Of a stretch of 64,000 nucleotides of DNA, positions 3,353 to 64,000 are shown in pieces (position 1 is the first letter of the stretch; each line of letters begins with the position of its first letter). The stretch is from Paramoeba atlantica (taxonomy: Eukaryota; Protista; Discosea): positions 124,001-188,000 of the forward strand of contig CDRNVI010000007.1 of assembly GCA_977017575.1 (NCBI GenBank), read 5' to 3'. The notes under the pieces were generated by a model, which saw only the letters and a list, made by a program, of their open reading frames with translations, had not been told where the DNA came from and ran no database searches. A program made the translations under genes and the position numbers.

Positions 3353-4585
3353 ATGAGTATTTGGTTGGATGAACAGTGTGTTTCGTACGATTGGCGTAAC
3401 AGAATTCGTGCTTTTAGCCGAGAGGACTTTCCATCATTTTGTGAAACCATATTCAGAATGGGTGAGCATGTTTCCGATTCGTCAAAATGTGATAATGTGC
3501 TTTTAGGTACGGTTCAGAAGAACTATTTTCTGGCGTTTTTCTTTAGGAAGTGGCGACAAAGTGGGTTTCCGCGTCATCTACGATTACCAGTACCAGAGAT
3601 ACGGCAAAGATTAAATTGCATGCTCGAAGGGAATCTAACTCACCTTGCTCGTATGGAATTCGAACTATTCGCTAGAGATGTTGAACATCATCGTGTTCGG
3701 CGAATCAAGGAGTTCTGCACCGCAGCATCTTGGAATCGTGCAGAAGTGAAAAATACCATTTTATCTTATCCAATTTCCATTAGACCTGAGAAAAATTCGA
3801 GTGCATCTTATATTGCAGAATGGGTGACAAAATATTTAGAGGATCGGTCTGCAGAAGAGTGCCAAATATCTCAAATCAGTTTCAGTTTACGTGATCCACT
3901 TACTCGCAAGCGTATTGATGTCGCAGTGAGAAGCCTCTCTTGTGCTCACATGCAACCGTTTGACTTAGACACTTTTCTTGCGTACTACGAATGTAGTCAG
4001 GCTTTGCAAACGGAACATCAGAATACTCATTGCGCATGTCCCGTGTGCAACAAAGTGATTTTATTGACCGATGTGCATCACGAGCCTATTCTTGATTTTC
4101 TTATTGAAGATCTGCACGAGGACGGCGATTTTGTATTGGTCAATAAAAATGGAAATTTCAGTATATCTGGGCTCACTGCAACTTACAATATTGATAAAGT
4201 TGAGTGCGAAAACAAAGAAAATGGGAATGCACAGGCTAACTTGGCTACGGCGACTGCTTCCAGTCACATTATCAGTTGTCATAATCCCGGTCTCCAGGAC
4301 ATAGAAGAAAACGACGAGAAATGCCTAGAAAAGGAACCCTCTGAAATTGCTTGCATTCAAGAAGAAATGAGTCTGAGTCAAGCAAATGTTATACAAGCGT
4401 ATAGTCAACATGCAATAAAAACAAATGCCAACTTGTTGGACCACACGTATCTTGACGTTTCCACAAAGGATCATGAGGTGGAATCAATAGCGAAAAAACA
4501 TGTGGATGAACTAGAACATTCGGAGCTTTCCCCTATAAAAACGGCTGAGTCAGTGGGGTGTGGAAGGAAAAGGCCTAGAAAATAG
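3353..4585 (+). CDS. SP-RING (MIZ zinc finger) SUMO E3 ligase-like protein (Siz/PIAS family)
   Basis: SLRDPLTRKRI..AVRSLSCAHMQPFD...CACPVC matches the zf-MIZ pattern. Confidence 0.78.
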   Translation: MSIWLDEQCVSYDWRNRIRAFSREDFPSFCETIFRMGEHVSDSSKCDNVLLGTVQKNYFLAFFFRKWRQSGFPRHLRLPVPEIRQRLNCMLEGNLTHLARMEFELFARDVEHHRVRRIKEFCTAASWNRAEVKNTILSYPISIRPEKNSSASYIAEWVTKYLEDRSAEECQISQISFSLRDPLTRKRIDVAVRSLSCAHMQPFDLDTFLAYYECSQALQTEHQNTHCACPVCNKVILLTDVHHEPILDFLIEDLHEDGDFVLVNKNGNFSISGLTATYNIDKVECENKENGNAQANLATATASSHIISCHNPGLQDIEENDEKCLEKEPSEIACIQEEMSLSQANVIQAYSQHAIKTNANLLDHTYLDVSTKDHEVESIAKKHVDELEHSELSPIKTAESVGCGRKRPRK

Positions 4586-4899
4586 TGAATTCGCAGGAAA
4601 CGGATGCCGCGGTGCGCGTGAATTCGTACTGCGAAGCATCTTCTGTTGCAACGGAACACAGTAGATCGGTAAAATATTTCACCTACAATCTTCACGTCGT
4701 AACTGAAAAAGAATGAATTCGAACGCCCACGTACGTGTACTTTGAGCACGAATCATCATCAGTCAATACGTTTGTGTCATCGCGACCTCCTCAAGATGAC
4801 ACAGATTTTGAGTGTTCCAAATGGAATGTAGGGGTAGTTCGGTTTAAATATTTTTACAAAATATATTTTTTTATATTTTCAGACCCTTTTTTTATATTA

Positions 4900-6384
4900 C
4901 TGTCCCCCCCTACTTATGCGCAACCGTTTGACCCGGCCACTTAAGCGCAATTTTGACGCATCGTTCAGAATAACAGCGCCGCAAAGCGGCGCGATTTTTT
5001 TTTGGGGGGTACGAATTTTTGTACAGATTTTCGCCGCTATTGAAATGGAGAGTGCAAGTAGTCCCTTTGGGGCGTTCGAGAATTATCTTCATCGATCTCT
5101 AGAGATCTCTGATCCACACTGACCACCGATCTGTACGGTGAGTCTGCATACTGTACTGTACATCAGTCTACAGTGGTGTTCAGCCTCTTTTACCCCCCCT
5201 ACAGGTCTTGCATTTTGTTCGATTTTGGAAATATTTTGTATGGGACTGTTTTTCGACCCAATCGTTCCGAATCCGAGGTCCTTTTCACTCGTGGACACCT
5301 GTATCATACCTAAACCGGGAAAAAACCCGAAAAAAAGTCGATTTGTTTTTTCACAGAGTACATTTTTTTTAAATTTGGTACACTTGTTGGTGATTCATGA
5401 CGAAGAAGCACCGCCCCCTGTGCTTACTTTCCTGCCTCGTGTGCCCCGAGAAGCGCACGGCACTCGCGATCGATTGAGTGCGACTTAAGTCCTATAAGAC
5501 ACTCGAAAAATTTCATAAACTTAGCCCCGGGTCCATCATTGAAACTTTTCGCCTTTTTTCTGAAGATTAACCGGAAACGTTTAAGAATGCCTTCCGGGAC
5601 TATAGTAAACGTTTTCTTTTGGTCAAGGAGGCTAAAGTGCATATGACTAAATACTAGAGATTACTTTGCACTCCTTTTCCACGTCTTCTGACCTACTTTA
5701 CTACTGTTCCTCATCCGAAACATTCAAAAAAATGAACCCAAAAAAGTTGTAATTAGTTTTTTTGACCCCTACCTGGCTAGGGGGGTAGGGGGTCGCTCGA
5801 GTGAAAAGGGCCTCGGATTCGGAACGATTGGGTCGAAAAACGGTGGTATACCAAATATTTCCAAAATCGGACAAAATACAAGACCTGTAGGGGGGGGTAA
5901 AAGACGCTGAACACCACTGTACATCAGTCTAAGTCCGTTTTATAGGGCTTCCTTGCTGTCTTTATCGCAGGTACCTTGGCGACCCTTGATAAAAACTTCT
6001 TCTAACTTCACGCGGAATACATCCGAAACTTTGGCTTTTGGAATGGCCGCGGTTCCAACCCATTCATGTACCTCAGACACTATCGCGCCACATAAATCAT
6101 TCTTATACATGCAACGACCCGTGTCAGAAGAATGGGACATCGCTTTTGATATCGACTTTTGAGGACCGTAGAGGAAGAAGGGGGAGAAAGGCACAAAGCA
6201 GAAAGCGGATTGCTAGGGGGGATAGTATATAAAAAGCAACCCCGAAGGGTACCCCGCGTATATAACTCATGATAGAAGCACGCGTCGCGAAGCGGCGCGA
6301 ATTTATTTTTTCACTCTTTTTTGACCCGGCTACTTACGCGCAATTTTAGGCCAAAACCTGGTTGCGTTTAAGTGGGGGGGACAG
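4900..6384. mobile_element. Non-autonomous TA-flanked TIR element of the same family as the pogo-like element at 50262-52413
   Basis: TA|CTGTCCCCCCCTACTTATGCGCAACC ... GGTTGCGTTTAAGTGGGGGGGACAG|TA. Shares the subterminal motif TGACCCGGCYACTTAAGCGCAATTTT with the 50-52 kb element. Confidence 0.85.
5171..5919. mobile_element. Nested MITE with ~120-bp TIRs starting CAGTGGTG
   Basis: About 5171-5290 is the reverse complement of about 5798-5919 with scattered mismatches. Flanked by TACATCAGTCTA on both sides. Confidence 0.85.
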
Positions 6385-56536: not shown

Positions 56537-56814
56537 GTACAGCTTTGTACTGGAGCGCACGAACTATTATGTGCTTGTATGTACTCTGAGGTTACTCAAA
56601 ATCTAAGACTGTTTTTGATATCCGGCGCATCCGAAATCGGATATGGGTAGCATTTGATTTGACGCAGCTTTCAACCCTCTTATTGAGCAACCTTTTTTGC
56701 TGAAAACTGTCTTTTGGAAACGCTCAAATCATATAGATAATCTTGCGTTGTACATCCTTATTTACATTCTACATTCCACTAAAGACTTTTACTTTTAAAA
56801 AGACTCGTTTCTAC

Positions 56815-59800
56815 ATGTCTGCAGACAGGGGACGTGGCACAAGGGGTCGGGGATCTAAGGCTATGGCTACTCCCACGCCGGCGCGTAACGTACACTCCGC
56901 GATACCTCCGCGAACCGTCTCGGCTCCGAATGACATCGGAAACCTTGCTCGAGCAGCACTTGTAGAACAGTCTTCCCGAGCCTCTCAAGGGAAGCCCATT
57001 CCCCCTGTTCGAGGTCCAAATCAACGTGACCCTCCTCCGAAACCGAAGTCAGGCAAGGGAGAAAAAGTAGAAGTCGTAGATAGCGGAGCACGAAAGAGCA
57101 CAGCGGAACCCCAACCCGGACCACCTTTCTCCAACCGTCCCAGAAAACCCGTCCTACACGAACCCACCGGACCAGCTGCGAGATATCCCGAAACCACCTA
57201 CACCAACCCCCCACCACCATTCGTCGATCGCAGACACCCTCAGCACCCCCAACCGATTGGCTACTACGACCATCCCCACCCCGAGGTTCCCCGCATGCAC
57301 GCCTCCCAGCCGATGCAGCCTGTCATGCACTACGCTCCTCACTACGCTTCCCATCACTTTCCGCATGACCCCTACGGGGGTACGCACGCGATCCCTGCAG
57401 GGTACGCCATGGCCTATGGGGTTCGAGGCCCAGAAGAAATACGACACCCCGGGACTACTGGGGTTTTTTACCCCCCGATGAGAATACCCCAACCCTCACC
57501 AGCATATCATAGGGATATGCCGGTCAAGGATGACACCTCTTTAGAAAGCGCTTCTGTACCGGCGCCTGTGAGCGAACCACCGCAGCCTGTTTTGGATATC
57601 GTTATCACGGATGCCAGTGGGAGACGTCACGATCTGCAGGACTGGGTCGCGACCTCGGAACACAATAAAGAGGAGGAAGTAAGGGTTTCGGCAGAGGAAA
57701 CGGACAAGACGTTGGATGGGGAAGAAACGGGACTATCCAAGGATAGTGTTCCGAGCTCAGCGGAGGAAAAACACGGAGGTGAGGAAAAGGAAGATGAAAA
57801 AATATCTCATGATTCAGCTGAAAGGTCTGAAAAAGAGGGGGATATCACGGATTCTTCAAGGACACAAGATGTTTCACAGCATAAACAAGAAGAGAACAAC
57901 GACGTTACACCCTCCAGCTCAGATGATATCTCAGAATCTATGGCTAACCTTAATATCTTATCAGCTCAGGAAACGCAATTATCCTCGAAGGAAGAAGTCG
58001 ATACACAGGATCTTGTGGAAGAGCAAACGAGCTCTGCACAAAGGACACATAATGCAGGTACGGATGTATCCCCAGTGGATGCCATATTCGAGATGTTCTT
58101 GCGACATCGCAAAGCATGGAATCCCGAGACATGTCCTCCGTTTCCCGGAGTCCTTGAAGTAAGACAATCTATAGAAATGTATAACAAGCGTGAAATGAAA
58201 GATAATGTTCTTGTGTACCACGAACCTTCTCGCGAGGAGCATGCGATCATATTCGGAACCGAGGTAAACAGAGCGCACAGTGTACGAGATATATTCACAA
58301 ACAAATCCGAGAATCCTTTTACACATCGCAATAGAAATCGAGAATCCGAATCTGAGGCAACTAAAAAGCATCTCCAGAGCATATTAAACAAGCTGTCCGA
58401 AGCGAATTACCGTTCGCTATGCACCGAACTGCTAAATACTAAATTTAATGCTCTATGTCGAGAACCCGAGTTTATGAAGGACGTTGTAAACATGTTCTTT
58501 GATAAAGCTATTAACGAAACAGCCTTTGCGCCTCTTTATGCACAATTTTGTCAGGACATTTATGCACACTGGAAAAGACAAGCGGTGGAGGATCGCTCTG
58601 ATCCGACAGACAAAAGTACACACCAATCTACGACGTTTCGCCGACAACTCCTTGAACATTGCAGAGAAGCCTTCATGAGCGGCTCTCATGTGCAGAGCGA
58701 TCCCCTTAGCGAGGTCAAGGAGGTCCCAGCAATGGACGATCCAGTCCACTGGAAACGCACCGTCGGAACTGTGAAATTTATAGGTGAGCTTTTCAAACTT
58801 CGACTCATAGCGAAAGGCATTATGCATGAAATCTCTTACAAAATGCTTTTTAGTCCTCTTACTGATAGAATGAGGGATAATTCTTTACTCCTTTTTTGTG
58901 AGCTGATGGAATCTATTGGTCCGCTTCTTGAAAACTCTGAGTCGGAAGTAGGGAATATGCACATTTACTTCGAGAATGTTTGTGTACTCTCCGCTACCTA
59001 TCCCAACATTCGCGTCCGATTTAAGCTTCTCAATTTATTGGAACTTCGACAACGTGACTGGGCAGGAGTTTCCAGCACAGCGCTGAGTAAAACATATGGT
59101 CCGTACTCCCAGGCTATGCCATCACAAGAGATTTCGTCGAAATCCGTCATGAGTTCCTCCGCTTCTCGGCCCCTACCGCCCCACTCCACGGGCAACTATG
59201 CCCGGCCTTCCTTGCGCGGAAGTCGAAGAGAGAACGAATCCCCTAGTCGTGGTAGCTACGCTGAACGTATGGTATCACCACTGGCGCCTAACACTGCGAA
59301 ATCTTTTCCTGCCGTCCGATGCGTCCTGTCGAGGACCTCCAGCGAACGATCGGATCTCTCGGCAATGAAACTACCAACGAGGTCCTCGTCTTCCGATTTG
59401 GATTCTGTACTCAATACACCCGACATTAACGCTAGACTTTCGAATTTGGGCTCAGCGACTACCGACCAGATTACACAAAAACTCGAGGAGAAAGCTATGA
59501 TGGCATTACAGGAAAGTATTCCTTATGCCATTGAAATCGTGGAAGTGTTTAAAATTAACGACTACAACCTTTTCCTTCAAAAGTGCATTGATACGCTGTG
59601 CAGCTCTGTCCAAAGATTTGGTGATGCGAGGTGTGCGTTTGGAAGCTTCTCAAAATCGATCCTCAAAAATACAGACGCGAAATCAGAACTTTCCATTGCT
59701 CTTAACTCAGTTATCCGAAATTGGATTTCTCGGGAGCAATATACTGATGCGCCAAAGCTCTGGGTGACTTTTGCGGAGATCGTTTCGTCACTTATAGAAA

Positions 59801-60396
59801 GTGGGCTACTTCCGAGGGGATATTGGAATGACGCCTTACAGATTGTGCTACAAGCCGGGGAAGCCGACATGAACTTAAAAGGTTACATTGAAGCTGTTCA
59901 TCTTAAAACAGACACGTCAGATATCACTGGCATCGCAAAGGATGTAACAAATATTCCGTATCTTCGAACAATGTCTGTCGCGGAGTGGCCTGAAAGCTTC
60001 GAATTATTAGTCAACGCAGATGTTGAAGAGTCCGCACTTAAGGAGTACAAGGCTATAAGGAAAGTGAAGTGGGTTTTTCCTTCAAAACGTTACGATGCTT
60101 TGTGGGCCAGCCGATGCGCTTCCGTTCTTTTTACATTTATGCTAAAAGAAAAAATTTCATATGAATCGGAGATGTGTGCACGGTTATTGGATTTCGCCGC
60201 TTTTATCGCCGACGGTCGTTCTGTAAAAGAAAGAGCACGAAACGAATTAATACTGCTAATTGAGTTGAATCATTCTGCACACGCTTTAGATATGAAAGAG
60301 GACGTACAAGTGCTTACTGATATTTTGGTGCAGAGCAAGATAATATCGACAGAGACAGTCACAGAGTGTAAAAATCTACTAAAACTTATACCTTAA
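56815..60396 (+). CDS. EIF4G: eIF4G-family translation initiation factor (MIF4G domain)
   Basis: SILNKLS..NY, FDKAINE..FAPLYAQFC, FRRQLL..C...F and GTVKFIGELFK; paralog not determined. Confidence 0.88.
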   Translation: MSADRGRGTRGRGSKAMATPTPARNVHSAIPPRTVSAPNDIGNLARAALVEQSSRASQGKPIPPVRGPNQRDPPPKPKSGKGEKVEVVDSGARKSTAEPQPGPPFSNRPRKPVLHEPTGPAARYPETTYTNPPPPFVDRRHPQHPQPIGYYDHPHPEVPRMHASQPMQPVMHYAPHYASHHFPHDPYGGTHAIPAGYAMAYGVRGPEEIRHPGTTGVFYPPMRIPQPSPAYHRDMPVKDDTSLESASVPAPVSEPPQPVLDIVITDASGRRHDLQDWVATSEHNKEEEVRVSAEETDKTLDGEETGLSKDSVPSSAEEKHGGEEKEDEKISHDSAERSEKEGDITDSSRTQDVSQHKQEENNDVTPSSSDDISESMANLNILSAQETQLSSKEEVDTQDLVEEQTSSAQRTHNAGTDVSPVDAIFEMFLRHRKAWNPETCPPFPGVLEVRQSIEMYNKREMKDNVLVYHEPSREEHAIIFGTEVNRAHSVRDIFTNKSENPFTHRNRNRESESEATKKHLQSILNKLSEANYRSLCTELLNTKFNALCREPEFMKDVVNMFFDKAINETAFAPLYAQFCQDIYAHWKRQAVEDRSDPTDKSTHQSTTFRRQLLEHCREAFMSGSHVQSDPLSEVKEVPAMDDPVHWKRTVGTVKFIGELFKLRLIAKGIMHEISYKMLFSPLTDRMRDNSLLLFCELMESIGPLLENSESEVGNMHIYFENVCVLSATYPNIRVRFKLLNLLELRQRDWAGVSSTALSKTYGPYSQAMPSQEISSKSVMSSSASRPLPPHSTGNYARPSLRGSRRENESPSRGSYAERMVSPLAPNTAKSFPAVRCVLSRTSSERSDLSAMKLPTRSSSSDLDSVLNTPDINARLSNLGSATTDQITQKLEEKAMMALQESIPYAIEIVEVFKINDYNLFLQKCIDTLCSSVQRFGDARCAFGSFSKSILKNTDAKSELSIALNSVIRNWISREQYTDAPKLWVTFAEIVSSLIESGLLPRGYWNDALQIVLQAGEADMNLKGYIEAVHLKTDTSDITGIAKDVTNIPYLRTMSVAEWPESFELLVNADVEESALKEYKAIRKVKWVFPSKRYDALWASRCASVLFTFMLKEKISYESEMCARLLDFAAFIADGRSVKERARNELILLIELNHSAHALDMKEDVQVLTDILVQSKIISTETVTECKNLLKLIP

Positions 60397-61573: not shown

Positions 61574-62360
61574 AAACTACGGACATAGATGTTAGAATAG
61601 AAAGATTCTCTTACGAAATAGTGGAAAGGTAAATAAGACGCGAGGCAAAAAAATGTAGAGCACCGAAATTACAACCTACAACGTTTTTATTTATTTAACT
61701 TCAGCACTGTTTTCTATTTTCCTTCATGGAAACGAACTACAGTGCACACAATATTTGTGTAACAAAAAAATATTGAGGGAGATACGGTGAGTATCTAACT
61801 CGCTTACTAAGGTTAATTCCAGGAGCCCAAAATTGGCATAAAACGAGCACAAAAACGATTTTTTCGAAATTTTAAAAACAGAGGTATGGCTCATCAATCA
61901 ACACAATCTCTGTAATTCTCCAAAAATGAAAAAAATCGAGTACAGTCCACGGTTTTTAGAACGCTTTTACCAAAAATGAGACTCGGAATGCGGCTCAGAA
62001 ACGGACATTTCAAATCCGAAAAAAACGCAAAGATCCTCGATTATGTTCCCAAAATTGACAGACTACAGCTGTTTCAAAGTTTGGGGAATATTTTTGAGCT
62101 CCTTAACTAACTTCCAGAAATATCTTTTTTTTGAAACGCATTTCACTCGCCGACGGCATAACAAATGAACGAAAAAAAGGTACGATTTTATCGGCCATGA
62201 AAAACTGGCCAGCTGGCCACTCCCTGAAACAATTTTGAGCTAGTCACTTCCTGGAAAACTGGCCAGATGGCTACCAAAAACTGCAGTTTGCATTTCGTAT
62301 ACGTAAGATGAATCGCGACGTCCAAAAAAAGTCGCAAGCTGCCCACCTCCTGCATGAAAG

Positions 62361-62701
62361 GGAAGCTGGTCACTTTTTCAGGGGGTGGCCAGGTGGCCAC
62401 TTTTTCAAGGGGTGGCCAGCTGGCCACTTTTTCAAGGGGTGGCCAATTGGCCACTTTTTCAAGGGGTGGTCAGCCGGGCACTTTTTCAGGTGGTGGCAAG
62501 CTGGCCACTTTTTCAAGGGGTGGCCAGCTGGCCACTTTTTCAGGGGGTGGCCAGCTGGCCACTTTTCAAGGGGTGGCCAGCTGGCCACTTTTTCAGGGGG
62601 TGGCCAGGTGGCCACTTTCTCAAGGGGTGGCCAGCTGGCCACTTTTTCAGGGGTTGGCCAGCTGGCCACTTTTTCAAGGGGTAGTCAGCTGACTACTTTT
62701 T
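62361..62701. repeat. 27-bp minisatellite, ~13 units, each with a 16-bp palindrome
   Basis: Unit approx. GTGGCCAGCTGGCCACTTTTTCAAGGG; degenerate copies at ~62205-62270. Confidence 0.95.
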
Positions 62702-62790
62702 AGAAGAAGATTGGCATTGTTTTGTCAATTCTTACTGCCATGATGCCCACGAATTTTCCTGATTGATACGACGAAACTATTTTTGTAGAA

Positions 62791-62997
62791 TCCAGGTATA
62801 TAGAGTCGAGGGAGATACGAAGCAACAGATGTAGCAAATTCCCACTGAAAAGAAATCGTATCTCCCTGCACGAAGTTGGCTCCAAGCTAGCAAGCGCATA
62901 GGTAGGCAGTTCTCGTGCAGGGAGATACGATTTCTTTTCGGTGGGAATCTGCTACATATGTTGCTTCGTATCTCCCTCGCCCCTTTATGGACCTGGA
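62791..62997. mobile_element. Foldback MITE (~85-bp arms), same family as 49585-49803
   Basis: TCCAGG...CGAGGGAGATACGAAGCAAC...GTATCTCCCTGCACGA and its inverse; flanks TTTGTAGAA / TTTGTAAAA (8 of 9 match). Confidence 0.82.
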
Positions 62998-63294
62998 TTT
63001 GTAAAACAAAAATTAGTAAATTTTTAATTAGTTAAACACTTTGGAAAATTCACGTTTTACACCTTACATTATTTTTTTTCTTTGTTTCGGAATTCTATTC
63101 TTTTTTACGAAAAGTTTTCAGAGTCCTTAACAGATTAGCAAAAGAATTGGTTATTCGAATACTCATGTAGAATGTTCATGTAGGGACACTGTATGGGAGG
63201 GGGCAAAAGTCAATCCCTTTTGGGGGCATTTTCTTCGAGGTAAAGATACCGTTTACATAAAATACGCTTCACTGAAGCCTGACACACTCAGCAT

Positions 63295-63367
63295 GGGAAA
63301 GCATGGTCGGGACCTCCTCCCGGTCTTCCTTAGCATTACCATTTTGTAGATGATACTAACGCCGACC
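63295..63367 (+). ncRNA. Candidate HDV-like self-cleaving ribozyme
   Basis: P1 GGGAAAG/CTTCCTT, P2 GGTCGG/CCGACC, P3 ACC/GGT, L3 TCCTCCC, P4 CATTAC/GTAGATG, J4/2 CTAA; manual fold only. Confidence 0.7.
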
Positions 63368-63586
63368 TTAGAGTAGACAACCTACTCAAATGATAGAAAT
63401 ACCGTTTCTGTAAAAATTGATTTTATCAAGTTGGCAATTTTTTCGGGGGCAGTGCAAAAAATAGTAAAACAAAAATTAGTGAATTTTTAATTAGTAGAAC
63501 TTTTTGACTATTTTACAATAAAAGTTTTACTAATTTTTGCGAGCACTGTAATTCGTGTCTTACCTTTCTTGCTCACCCCTTACCTC

Positions 63587-64000
63587 ATGACATTCAGAGC
63601 CTCAGAGACACCGAAAAAACCTCCTTGTCCCCCACCTCGAACTCCACTGCCGGAGGATCTGAAATTCGGAGCCATTCTGACGCCTAATGTGCTCCAGGTA
63701 GACTGGACCGCAAGCCAGGGCTGGGGAAAGCCCTACTTTCGGAAAACACAGAAGAAACTTCTTCTGTCCTACAGCTGCAGTGGGCTTCACTACGCGCTGT
63801 CTTGCTTTGAGGGGATGAAAGTGTATCGCGACCCCACAGGGGGACTGCGCCTGTTCCGTCCTGACATGCACGCTGCCCGGTTTCTTCGCAGCGCTCTACG
63901 TCTCACGCTACCGGGGTTTGACGAGACTGAGCTGGTGGAGCTGATCAAAATCGCTGTCCGCCGGGACCAGTCCTGGATGCCACAGCGTGAGGGCTGCACG
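63587..64000 (+). CDS. BCAT: Branched-chain amino acid aminotransferase, 5' part (runs off the window end)
   Basis: Manual translation from ATG 63587: DLKFG...GWGKP...GLHYALSCFEGMKVYR...RLFRPDMHAARF..SA.RL.LP; absent from the ORF track because there is no stop in the window. Confidence 0.93.
   Translation, partial: MTFRASETPKKPPCPPPRTPLPEDLKFGAILTPNVLQVDWTASQGWGKPYFRKTQKKLLLSYSCSGLHYALSCFEGMKVYRDPTGGLRLFRPDMHAARFLRSALRLTLPGFDETELVELIKIAVRRDQSWMPQREGCT

Follow-up and report, generated by a model that had tools for sequence, protein, structure and literature searches.

The window analyzed here, a whole stretch of 64,000 nt (positions 124,001 to 188,000 of contig CDRNVI010000007.1, Paramoeba atlantica assembly GCA_977017575.1), contains 73 nucleotides that an earlier note had described as a candidate hepatitis delta virus (HDV)-like ribozyme. 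They lie in the spacer between an open reading frame (ORF) with a MIF4G domain and a BCAT-like gene, in the sense direction of this transcription unit. The locus raises the question of whether this segment is a ribozyme sequence at all, what kind of element carries it, and whether it would still cut an RNA in front of BCAT. Our analysis indicates that it is probably a recently damaged member of a genuine 73-nt HDV-like module, which occurs in at least 150 copies in many transposable element (TE) families and lies here inside a miniature inverted-repeat transposable element (MITE).

The evidence comes from the relatives of the window copy. A genome-wide search for covarying copies, a course the earlier note had suggested, yielded a large family with some compensatory changes. 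A 25-nt pattern over P2, P3, L3 and P1' (P, helix; L, loop; J, joining segment) was found at 122 places in the 45.7-Mb assembly, and the reversed control pattern was found at none. For a covariance model, R1, 44 copies were used, among them the near-identical haplotig twin (L002) of the window copy and not the window copy itself; the structure of the model comprised P1, P3 and P4, and P2 was entered as sequence only. R1 matched at least 150 places in the genome and, in the window, exactly positions 63295-63367 over its full length (80.1 bits, E 1.5e-16), with no other match there. About 100 copies were compared, and pairs were counted on sets of 61 and 67 distinct copies.

The copies belong to at least 14 repeat families, whose flanks differ and which have only the 73-nt block in common. 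When aligned on G1, the mean pairwise identity between families was 0.74 in the block, compared with 0.30-0.35 over the 40 nt upstream and 0.27-0.28 over the 40 nt downstream. Beyond the block, the only widely kept bases were A(-2), T(-1) and the T that directly follows P2. The conserved unit therefore runs from the predicted cleavage site to the 3' strand of P2, and its limits agree base for base with the coordinates originally read by hand. Examples of intact natural copies are L006:1554-1626:-, L051:1554-1626:+, L081:491-563:+, L088:491-563:+ and L128:301-373:+. Relative to neighboring long ORFs, 13 copies were in sense, 6 in antisense and 13 in undecided orientation, with haplotig duplicates counted.

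On re-reading, the 73 letters and their coordinates proved exact, and the perfect P2 and P3 and the P1 of six pairs in seven with G1-U that had been claimed for them were borne out. The parts of the window copy are as follows:

63295-63367, + strand: HDV-like ribozyme module, decayed copy (sequence read; R1 positions 1-73)
63295-63301 with 63325-63331, + strand: P1, 6/7 paired, with four Watson-Crick pairs, the wobbles G1-U and G2-U, and an A-C mismatch at 63298
63302-63304, + strand: J1/2 (sequence read)
63305-63310 with 63362-63367, + strand: P2, 6/6 Watson-Crick pairs
63312-63314 with 63322-63324, + strand: P3, 3/3 pairs
63315-63321, + strand: L3, TCCTCCC
63332-63333, + strand: P1.1 partner, forming one P1.1 pair in the window copy
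63337-63344 with 63348-63355, + strand: P4, a hairpin of eight positions with one C-A mismatch (63353)
63356-63361, + strand: J4/2, which begins CTAA
T63294/G63295, + strand: predicted cleavage site
63356, + strand: predicted catalytic C of J4/2, equivalent to HDV C75/C76 (C in this column in 61/67 distinct copies)

The strand order, P1-P2-P3-P3'-P1'-(P1.1)-P4-P4'-P2', is the same in the window copy as in the family. Taken by itself, the HDV-like fold of the single window copy is not above chance. A topology descriptor (P1 with at least 6/7 pairs and G1 paired, P2 6/6, P3 3/3 and a C near P2') gave about 10 matches per dinucleotide-shuffled 64-kb window and, in the real window, fitted about 10 places besides this one. 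When the L3 U...G signature was added, 0.4 matches were obtained in shuffles and none in the window, the window copy being without the G. The minimum-free-energy z-score of the window copy was +0.74 against shuffles, and its fold was without P1. It is because of its family, not its fold, that the window copy stands above chance.

Most copies have a P1 of GGGGAAG/CTTCCCT, with seven pairs and G1-U as the first. L3 is TCCTCGC in family A and TCCTCGT in the D families. GG follows P1' in most families and gives a two-pair P1.1, while families A and B and the window copy form one pair. The consensus P4 is a clean hairpin of 7-8 bp, and in the consensus J4/2 the C precedes TAA, AGA or TGA. The deviations first listed for the window copy (the C in L3, the single P1.1 pair and the A-C mismatch in P1) are thus mostly gone from the consensus of its relatives, different families removing different ones.

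All five helices could be drawn on the 67 distinct copies. Standard pairs occupied 90-92% of the cells in the sets of 61 and 67 copies (90.4% for 67), and 30-48% when the partners were slid by 1-3 columns. The paired percentage, the count of double-change cells and the covariation score were each higher than in any of 500 shuffles. In P1, compensatory changes from G-C to A-U were seen at pair 4 (L128) and at pair 7 (L134 and L135). The pseudoknot pair of P1.1 showed a double change from C-G to U-A in L067 and L108, and the P4 pair 46-58 changed from C-G to U-A in 12 copies, with three further P4 pairs also compensated. P1 was 94% paired, its first pair being G-U in 55, G-C in 5 and A-U in 2 of the 67 copies. 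The signature bases were kept in nearly all of them (G1 in 62, L3 U in 65, L3 G in 63 and J4/2 C in 61 of 67), and the two bases after the J4/2 C varied (T/A, then G/A). A strict intactness test was passed by 34 of the 67 copies, and the window copy failed it at one position only. Among five intact copies, minimum-free-energy folds contained P1 in all five and P4 as drawn in four; in the intact copy of family B, P4 folded with an internal mismatch.

A copy of the D5 family was compared with 4227 Rfam families at E ≤ 10, and only HDV_ribozyme and drz-agam-1 were matched. The match to RF00094 scored 17.1 bits (gathering score 50), with P1 and P3 in register, and that to RF01787 scored 11 bits (gathering score 37), with a P3-L3 13-mer identical to the consensus. 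The description of the 73 nt as HDV-like ribozyme sequence is thus supported at the level of the family, by signature bases, pairing and block limits.

Several results weigh against a genuine ribozyme family. Seven pairs had double changes, a number not above that in shuffles (50/500 and 149/500), and P2 and P3 varied through wobble pairs only. As expected among closely related copies, the support from covariation is real but modest. Intact copies had minimum-free-energy z-scores of only about -1. The search with HDV-like models that the earlier note had also advised went against it: in Rfam, a 201-nt slice with the window copy gave no HDV-type match even at E ≤ 10, the family-B copy gave no HDV match at E ≤ 10, and no Rfam family reached its gathering score on the window, family-B or D5 copy. 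Sequence of the ribozyme family was absent from the possible RNA run, and the runs that contain it hold DNA-like contigs. In most families the sequence upstream of G1 is part of the repeat unit, which is unexpected for a ribozyme that heads a retroposon, and we know of no need for RNA processing in a DNA-type MITE. As to the Rfam results, the HDV-type models there are without the pseudoknot and likely miss many genomic HDV-like ribozymes. It was through secondary-structure-based searches that genomic HDV-like ribozymes were discovered (PMC6765202). A minus-strand match of Hairpin-meta1 to exactly 63295-63367 (Rfam, 17 bits, E 1.2) was taken as chance.

To describe the damage in the window copy, it was aligned with family A. 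Five changes from the family-A consensus were found:

63298, + strand: P1 position 4, G to A, which leaves an A-C mismatch at the center of P1
63330, + strand: C to T, giving G2-U, a different pair from 63298 and hence not compensating
63320, + strand: L3 position 6, G to C, the signature G of the U-G pair (G in 63/67 copies)
63347, + strand: C to T, in the P4 loop
63353, + strand: G to A, giving a C-A mismatch in P4

The haplotig twin on contig C65 is 99% identical over 900 nt; it has four of these changes and keeps the L3 G. The repeat-derived contigs over 63320 all read G, and no contig over this position is specific to the locus. Since the twin has the other four changes and not that in L3, the change from G to C is private to the window copy and would be very recent, or possibly an assembly error. 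The L3 U-G pair (U23/G28) is reported to be perfectly conserved in HDV-like ribozymes and part of their signature, and most substitutions of it abolish or strongly lower cleavage (PMC3386971). The family has this U...G pair; the window copy, with C at 63320, does not. L1TcRz, an HDV-like ribozyme of kinetoplastid mobile elements, is active with a one-pair P1.1 (PMC3185411). The initial suspicion that the window copy may be slow or dead fits these findings. Most probably the copy in front of BCAT is an inert relic, which would cleave poorly or not at all and have no role in BCAT expression.

The surroundings of the window copy were then read for the element that carries it. The features of the locus are:

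56743-60396, + strand: upstream ORF with MIF4G domain (Pfam)
62999-63548, + strand: family-A non-autonomous element with terminal inverted repeats (TIRs) (alignment of 12 copies with flanks; genome matches)
63001-63043 and 63464-63506, + strand: MITE subterminal repeat pair (repeat D3, 88% identity)
63241-63262, + strand: spliced-leader-like box, upstream (…GATACCGTTT…), in the 22-nt direct repeat D4
63394-63415, + strand: spliced-leader-like box, downstream (…ATACCGTTTCTGTAAAA), second member of the direct repeat, in all family-A copies
63587-64000, + strand: start of the BCAT-like gene (class IV aminotransferase; Pfam Aminotran_4, E 4.6e-05, 138 aa), which runs off the window

Family A has the termini TA/CAGTGCACAC... 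(5' CAGTGC) and ...GCACTG/TA, subterminal repeats and no coding capacity, and by its sequence it is a Tc1/mariner-type MITE. In the window, the 3' terminus ...GCACTG ends at 63548 and is followed by TA at 63549-63550. The window element is without its first ~35 nt, the 5' TIR, and without an internal segment of ~200 nt; at 62997, a loose-end contig reads ACAGTGCACACAATT.... TA was present at every complete end examined, namely at least eight 3' ends and three 5' ends of family A and five copies of family B. Family B is ~880 bp long, with TIRs of ~27 nt (CTCCCTCTCTCATTAA...) and TA flanks in 5/5 copies that have both ends, and one copy of family D2 has matching inverted termini.

These TIR/TA termini place the ribozyme inside the element, ~300 nt from its end, and therefore not at the 5' end of a retroposon. 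It had been proposed that the ribozyme marks the 5' end of a small retro-insertion of 144 bp, flanked by ATACCGTTT direct repeats. The repeats do exist, at 63246-63254 and 63399-63407 within the 22-nt direct repeat. They are not insertion duplications, however, because every family-A copy carries both, and the retro-insertion itself finds no support, given the TA-flanked TIR element and the conserved sequence upstream. Families A and B are homologous over the ~135 nt in front of G1, and every family-A copy has this stretch. The spliced-leader-like box, ATAC[CA]GTTTCTGTA, occurs in families A, D4, L065, L113 and L121 at 35-45 nt before G1, and is diverged in B. A split repeat of the Trypanosoma cruzi SIRE/VIPER kind was considered and dropped, as the elements have TIRs and TA flanks and the genome is rich in other TEs.

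A retroposon setting was found for family D5, a type resembling short interspersed elements (SINEs). It is ~190 nt long, starts at G1 flush with a preceding A-run and ends in its own poly(A). The locus L127 (G000:C87:238000-247999; LINE and array at L127:1713-8690) contains a long interspersed element (LINE) with an RVT_1 ORF (3544-6375) and poly(A), followed by short poly(A) retroposons. D5 copies start at L127:6668 and 8268, each after an A-run of ~20-25 A and with different upstream neighbors. A start at G1 directly after an A-run is what retrotransposition of self-cleaved RNA would leave. The LINE in L127 had no detectable ribozyme head, and no ORF starting just downstream of the ribozyme, as in an autonomous retroposon with such a head, was found in the loci examined. 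L127 also holds a second SINE type, which shares its 3' tail with the ribozyme-headed one and has a different head, starting CCCGGTCCGGAACGCGCGAATGG; this head had no Rfam match.

The junctions of the L127 array are ...GTAACG on its upstream side and CGATAAAGATACAGTTTCTGTAC on the other, and the array ends at sequence with CAGTTTCTGTAC, which we take to be the kinetoplastid spliced-leader motif. This suggests that the L127 retroposons may target a spliced-leader gene. The idea that the leader ...CTCAGCAT is the first 10 nt of the spliced-leader exon was rejected: no CAGCAT-CGATAAAGATACAGTTTCTGTAC join was found in the genome, and the boxes are preceded by ...GTAA/.

In family D3 (L067:550-798(-), G000:C39:429025-429252(+) and C40:421534-421761(-)), a conserved ORF precedes the ribozyme, which starts ~20 nt past its stop codon. 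The full-length D3 ORF has 653 aa and is found at G000:C39:429025 and C40:421534. No Pfam match was obtained for its last 83 aa and no atlas match for the ORF, and its HMMER relatives were weak and uninformative. The possibility of a TnpB/Fanzor protein with a guide-RNA-trimming ribozyme was considered and found no support, with no match to PF07282. A second, deleted leader-plus-ribozyme unit follows the first in D3.

An intact RNA of the family is predicted to fold into a nested double pseudoknot (P1, P1.1, P2, P3 and P4) and to cut itself 5' of G1, using the J4/2 C and a Mg2+ bound at the L3 U-G and G1-U pairs. The products would be a downstream fragment with a 5'-OH and an upstream fragment with a 2',3'-cyclic phosphate. 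Judged by the start of the D5 copies, such cleavage may define retroposon 5' ends. We infer every step of this self-cleavage chemistry from the fold.

Three other explanations of the window copy were weighed against a damaged member of a genuine ribozyme family. A chance resemblance of intergenic sequence to the HDV topology would accord with the ~10 loose-descriptor matches per shuffled window, the failure to match HDV models in Rfam and the z-score of +0.74. It is refuted by the family evidence, that is, by 122 pattern matches against none in the control, by at least 150 model matches and by block limits that agree to the base, and we regard it as hardly credible. The 73-nt block could also be functional and non-catalytic, serving as an internal promoter, a DNA-level signal or an RNA structure to which a protein binds. 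Sharply bounded conservation speaks for selection, not for catalysis, most hosts are DNA-type MITEs in which no RNA cleavage is needed, the upstream A(-2)T(-1) and the leader are co-conserved with the block, and the Pr77 sequence of kinetoplastid retroposons likewise serves as a promoter. This explanation nevertheless appears improbable, as the bases that matter for catalysis only (the G1 wobble, L3 U/G and J4/2 C) are the most conserved while their neighbors vary, the P1.1 pseudoknot pair covaries, the P3-L3 13-mer is that of a known active ribozyme family (drz-agam-1), and retroposon DNA copies begin at the predicted cleavage site.

That the window copy is still active and cuts the polycistronic precursor ~290 nt upstream of the BCAT start codon is unlikely. 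Its sense orientation within the transcription unit would suit this role, P2 and P3 are perfect, G1-U, L3 U and the J4/2 C are kept, and the strict test was failed at a single position. Some single substitutions of the L3 pair in HDV retain >15% cleavage (PMC3386971), and the one-pair P1.1 is tolerated in L1TcRz (PMC3185411). However, the base replaced by C in L3 is the signature G, an A-C mismatch and a second wobble are present in P1, the mismatch at its center, P4 contains a C-A mismatch, the minimum-free-energy fold lacks P1, and family sequence is absent from the possible RNA run. A decayed copy of a genuine HDV-like module thus remains our preferred reading of the window copy.

The association of the ribozyme module with DNA-type elements is unusual. 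One option is that the module was inherited from autonomous parents that used it to free their mRNA from polycistronic read-through or to have it translated; another is that a spliced-leader-gene fragment holding a ribozyme-headed retroposon was captured; a host-level effect is a third. A more specific proposal, which we put forward tentatively and consider doubtful, is that cut-and-paste TIR/TA transposons adopted the HDV-like ribozyme as an RNA-processing signal that frees the transcript, perhaps for translation. The transcript would then be excised from read-through RNA without the neighboring trans-splicing and polyadenylation signals, the MITE copies, including that of the window, would be deletion derivatives that still have the signal, and D3, with its ribozyme ~20 nt past the stop codon of the 653-aa ORF, would be the coding example.

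Among known systems, the Rfam families HDV_ribozyme and drz-Agam-1 are nearest in sequence. L1TcRz/Pr77 is nearest in host group and role, and R2 in its logic for site-specific elements. The family resembles the HDV antigenomic ribozyme (RF00094) in helix order, in a 7-bp P1 with G1-U, in a J1/2 that starts CAUGG, in the 3-bp P3 ACC/GGU, and in a J4/2 of C then UAA. The L3 of family A, UCCUCGC, is presumably identical to that of the HDV antigenomic ribozyme. The family differs from HDV in its short P4 of 7-8 bp and in a 6-bp P2 with a 2-nt spacer after CUAA. HDV is a circular RNA replicon, whereas the present family is genomic, carried by TEs in a protist and predicted from sequence. In the D families, the P3-L3-P3' 13-mer, ACCUCCUCGUGGU, is identical to the model consensus of drz-Agam-1 (RF01787), whereas the rest of that model was unaligned on the D5 copy (11 bits).

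To our knowledge, the only HDV-like ribozymes known so far from kinetoplastids are the divergent Pr77/L1TcRz sequences in L1Tc/ingi elements of trypanosomatids. L1TcRz/Pr77 (L1Tc, NARTc, ingi and SIDER) is, like the present family, an HDV-like ribozyme in kinetoplastid mobile elements, and it frees the element RNA from polycistronic read-through (PMC3185411, PMC4035085). D5 is like L1TcRz in that the element starts at the cleavage site. Pr77 forms the first 77 nt of retroposons of the L1Tc/ingi clade and doubles as a promoter, whereas the window copy does not have this placement and is internal to a TIR/TA element. The R2 ribozyme forms the 5' end of site-specific retroposons and processes the 28S/R2 co-transcript (PMC3774820). 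L127 is R2-like in having a ribozyme-headed SINE among poly(A) retroposons inserted in spliced-leader-like sequence. R2 elements target rDNA, whereas the target in L127 would be a spliced-leader gene, and the LINE there is without a detectable ribozyme head.

The genomic HDV-like ribozymes of eukaryotes from the Webb/Luptak searches are, like this family, multicopy, dispersed and tied to mobile elements (PMC6765202). In the copies reviewed, the downstream sequence is conserved and the upstream sequence is variable (PMC6765202), whereas most families here conserve the upstream sequence too, and several hosts are of the TIR/TA DNA type. Retrozymes, Schistosoma SINEs and Penelope-like elements share with the families described here a small, non-coding form with an internal ribozyme, sometimes in tandem (PMC6765202). 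They carry hammerhead ribozymes and move through RNA, whereas families A and B have the TIRs and TA duplications typical of cut-and-paste elements. In the literature searched, no paper was found that describes HDV-like ribozymes for spliced-leader-targeting elements, SIRE/VIPER, MITEs or DNA transposons, or HDV-like ribozyme modules directly behind an ORF.

The family is large and has a textbook-like core in a TE-rich kinetoplastid relative, close to the Rfam HDV and drz-agam-1 models in P3-L3, and its dozens of natural variants constitute a mutational series on which the fold can be tested. If embedded copies are active, each insertion in sense orientation would add a self-cleavage site to a polycistronic unit. 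Mobile elements would then reshape mRNA processing in a setting where gene-by-gene control of transcription is lacking.

Some copies of the module are repeated at one locus. At L123:490-680 and at L126 (G000:C54), two leader-plus-ribozyme units stand head to tail, 109 nt apart; if both units of L123 cut, an RNA of ~109 nt with 5'-OH and cyclic-phosphate ends would be released. Four R1 matches of 41 bits each, spaced by ~1691 nt, were found at G000:C21:145880-151015(-), which suggests a tandem array of ribozyme-bearing units. In metagenomes, 18 contigs with the degenerate 22-mer scored at most 20 bits with R1 and included no convincing relatives. The GC-rich metagenome contigs L152, L156, L158 and L162 contain an identical stretch with CGGGACCUCCUCGCGGUCUUCCCG (20 bits, E 0.014 with R1), which could be chance or a bacterial HDV-like motif.

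Other repeats were observed beside the MITE in the window. A dispersed repeat of ~300 bp (62700-63008) adjoins and replaces the 5' end of the MITE. It contains an internal 76-nt inverted repeat (62798-62873/62913-62988, 92% complementary) and has at least 15 copies in the genome, in both orientations and with 84-91% identity. At positions 62294-62755, 27-nt units based on the 16-nt palindrome GTGGCCAGCTGGCCAC follow one another in tandem, and this array gave spurious, sub-threshold Rfam matches to miRNA precursors. At 63530-63590, the only AG between a pyrimidine-rich stretch and the BCAT ATG lies in the 3' terminus of the MITE (63542-63543), and the MITE may thus supply the trans-splice acceptor region of BCAT.

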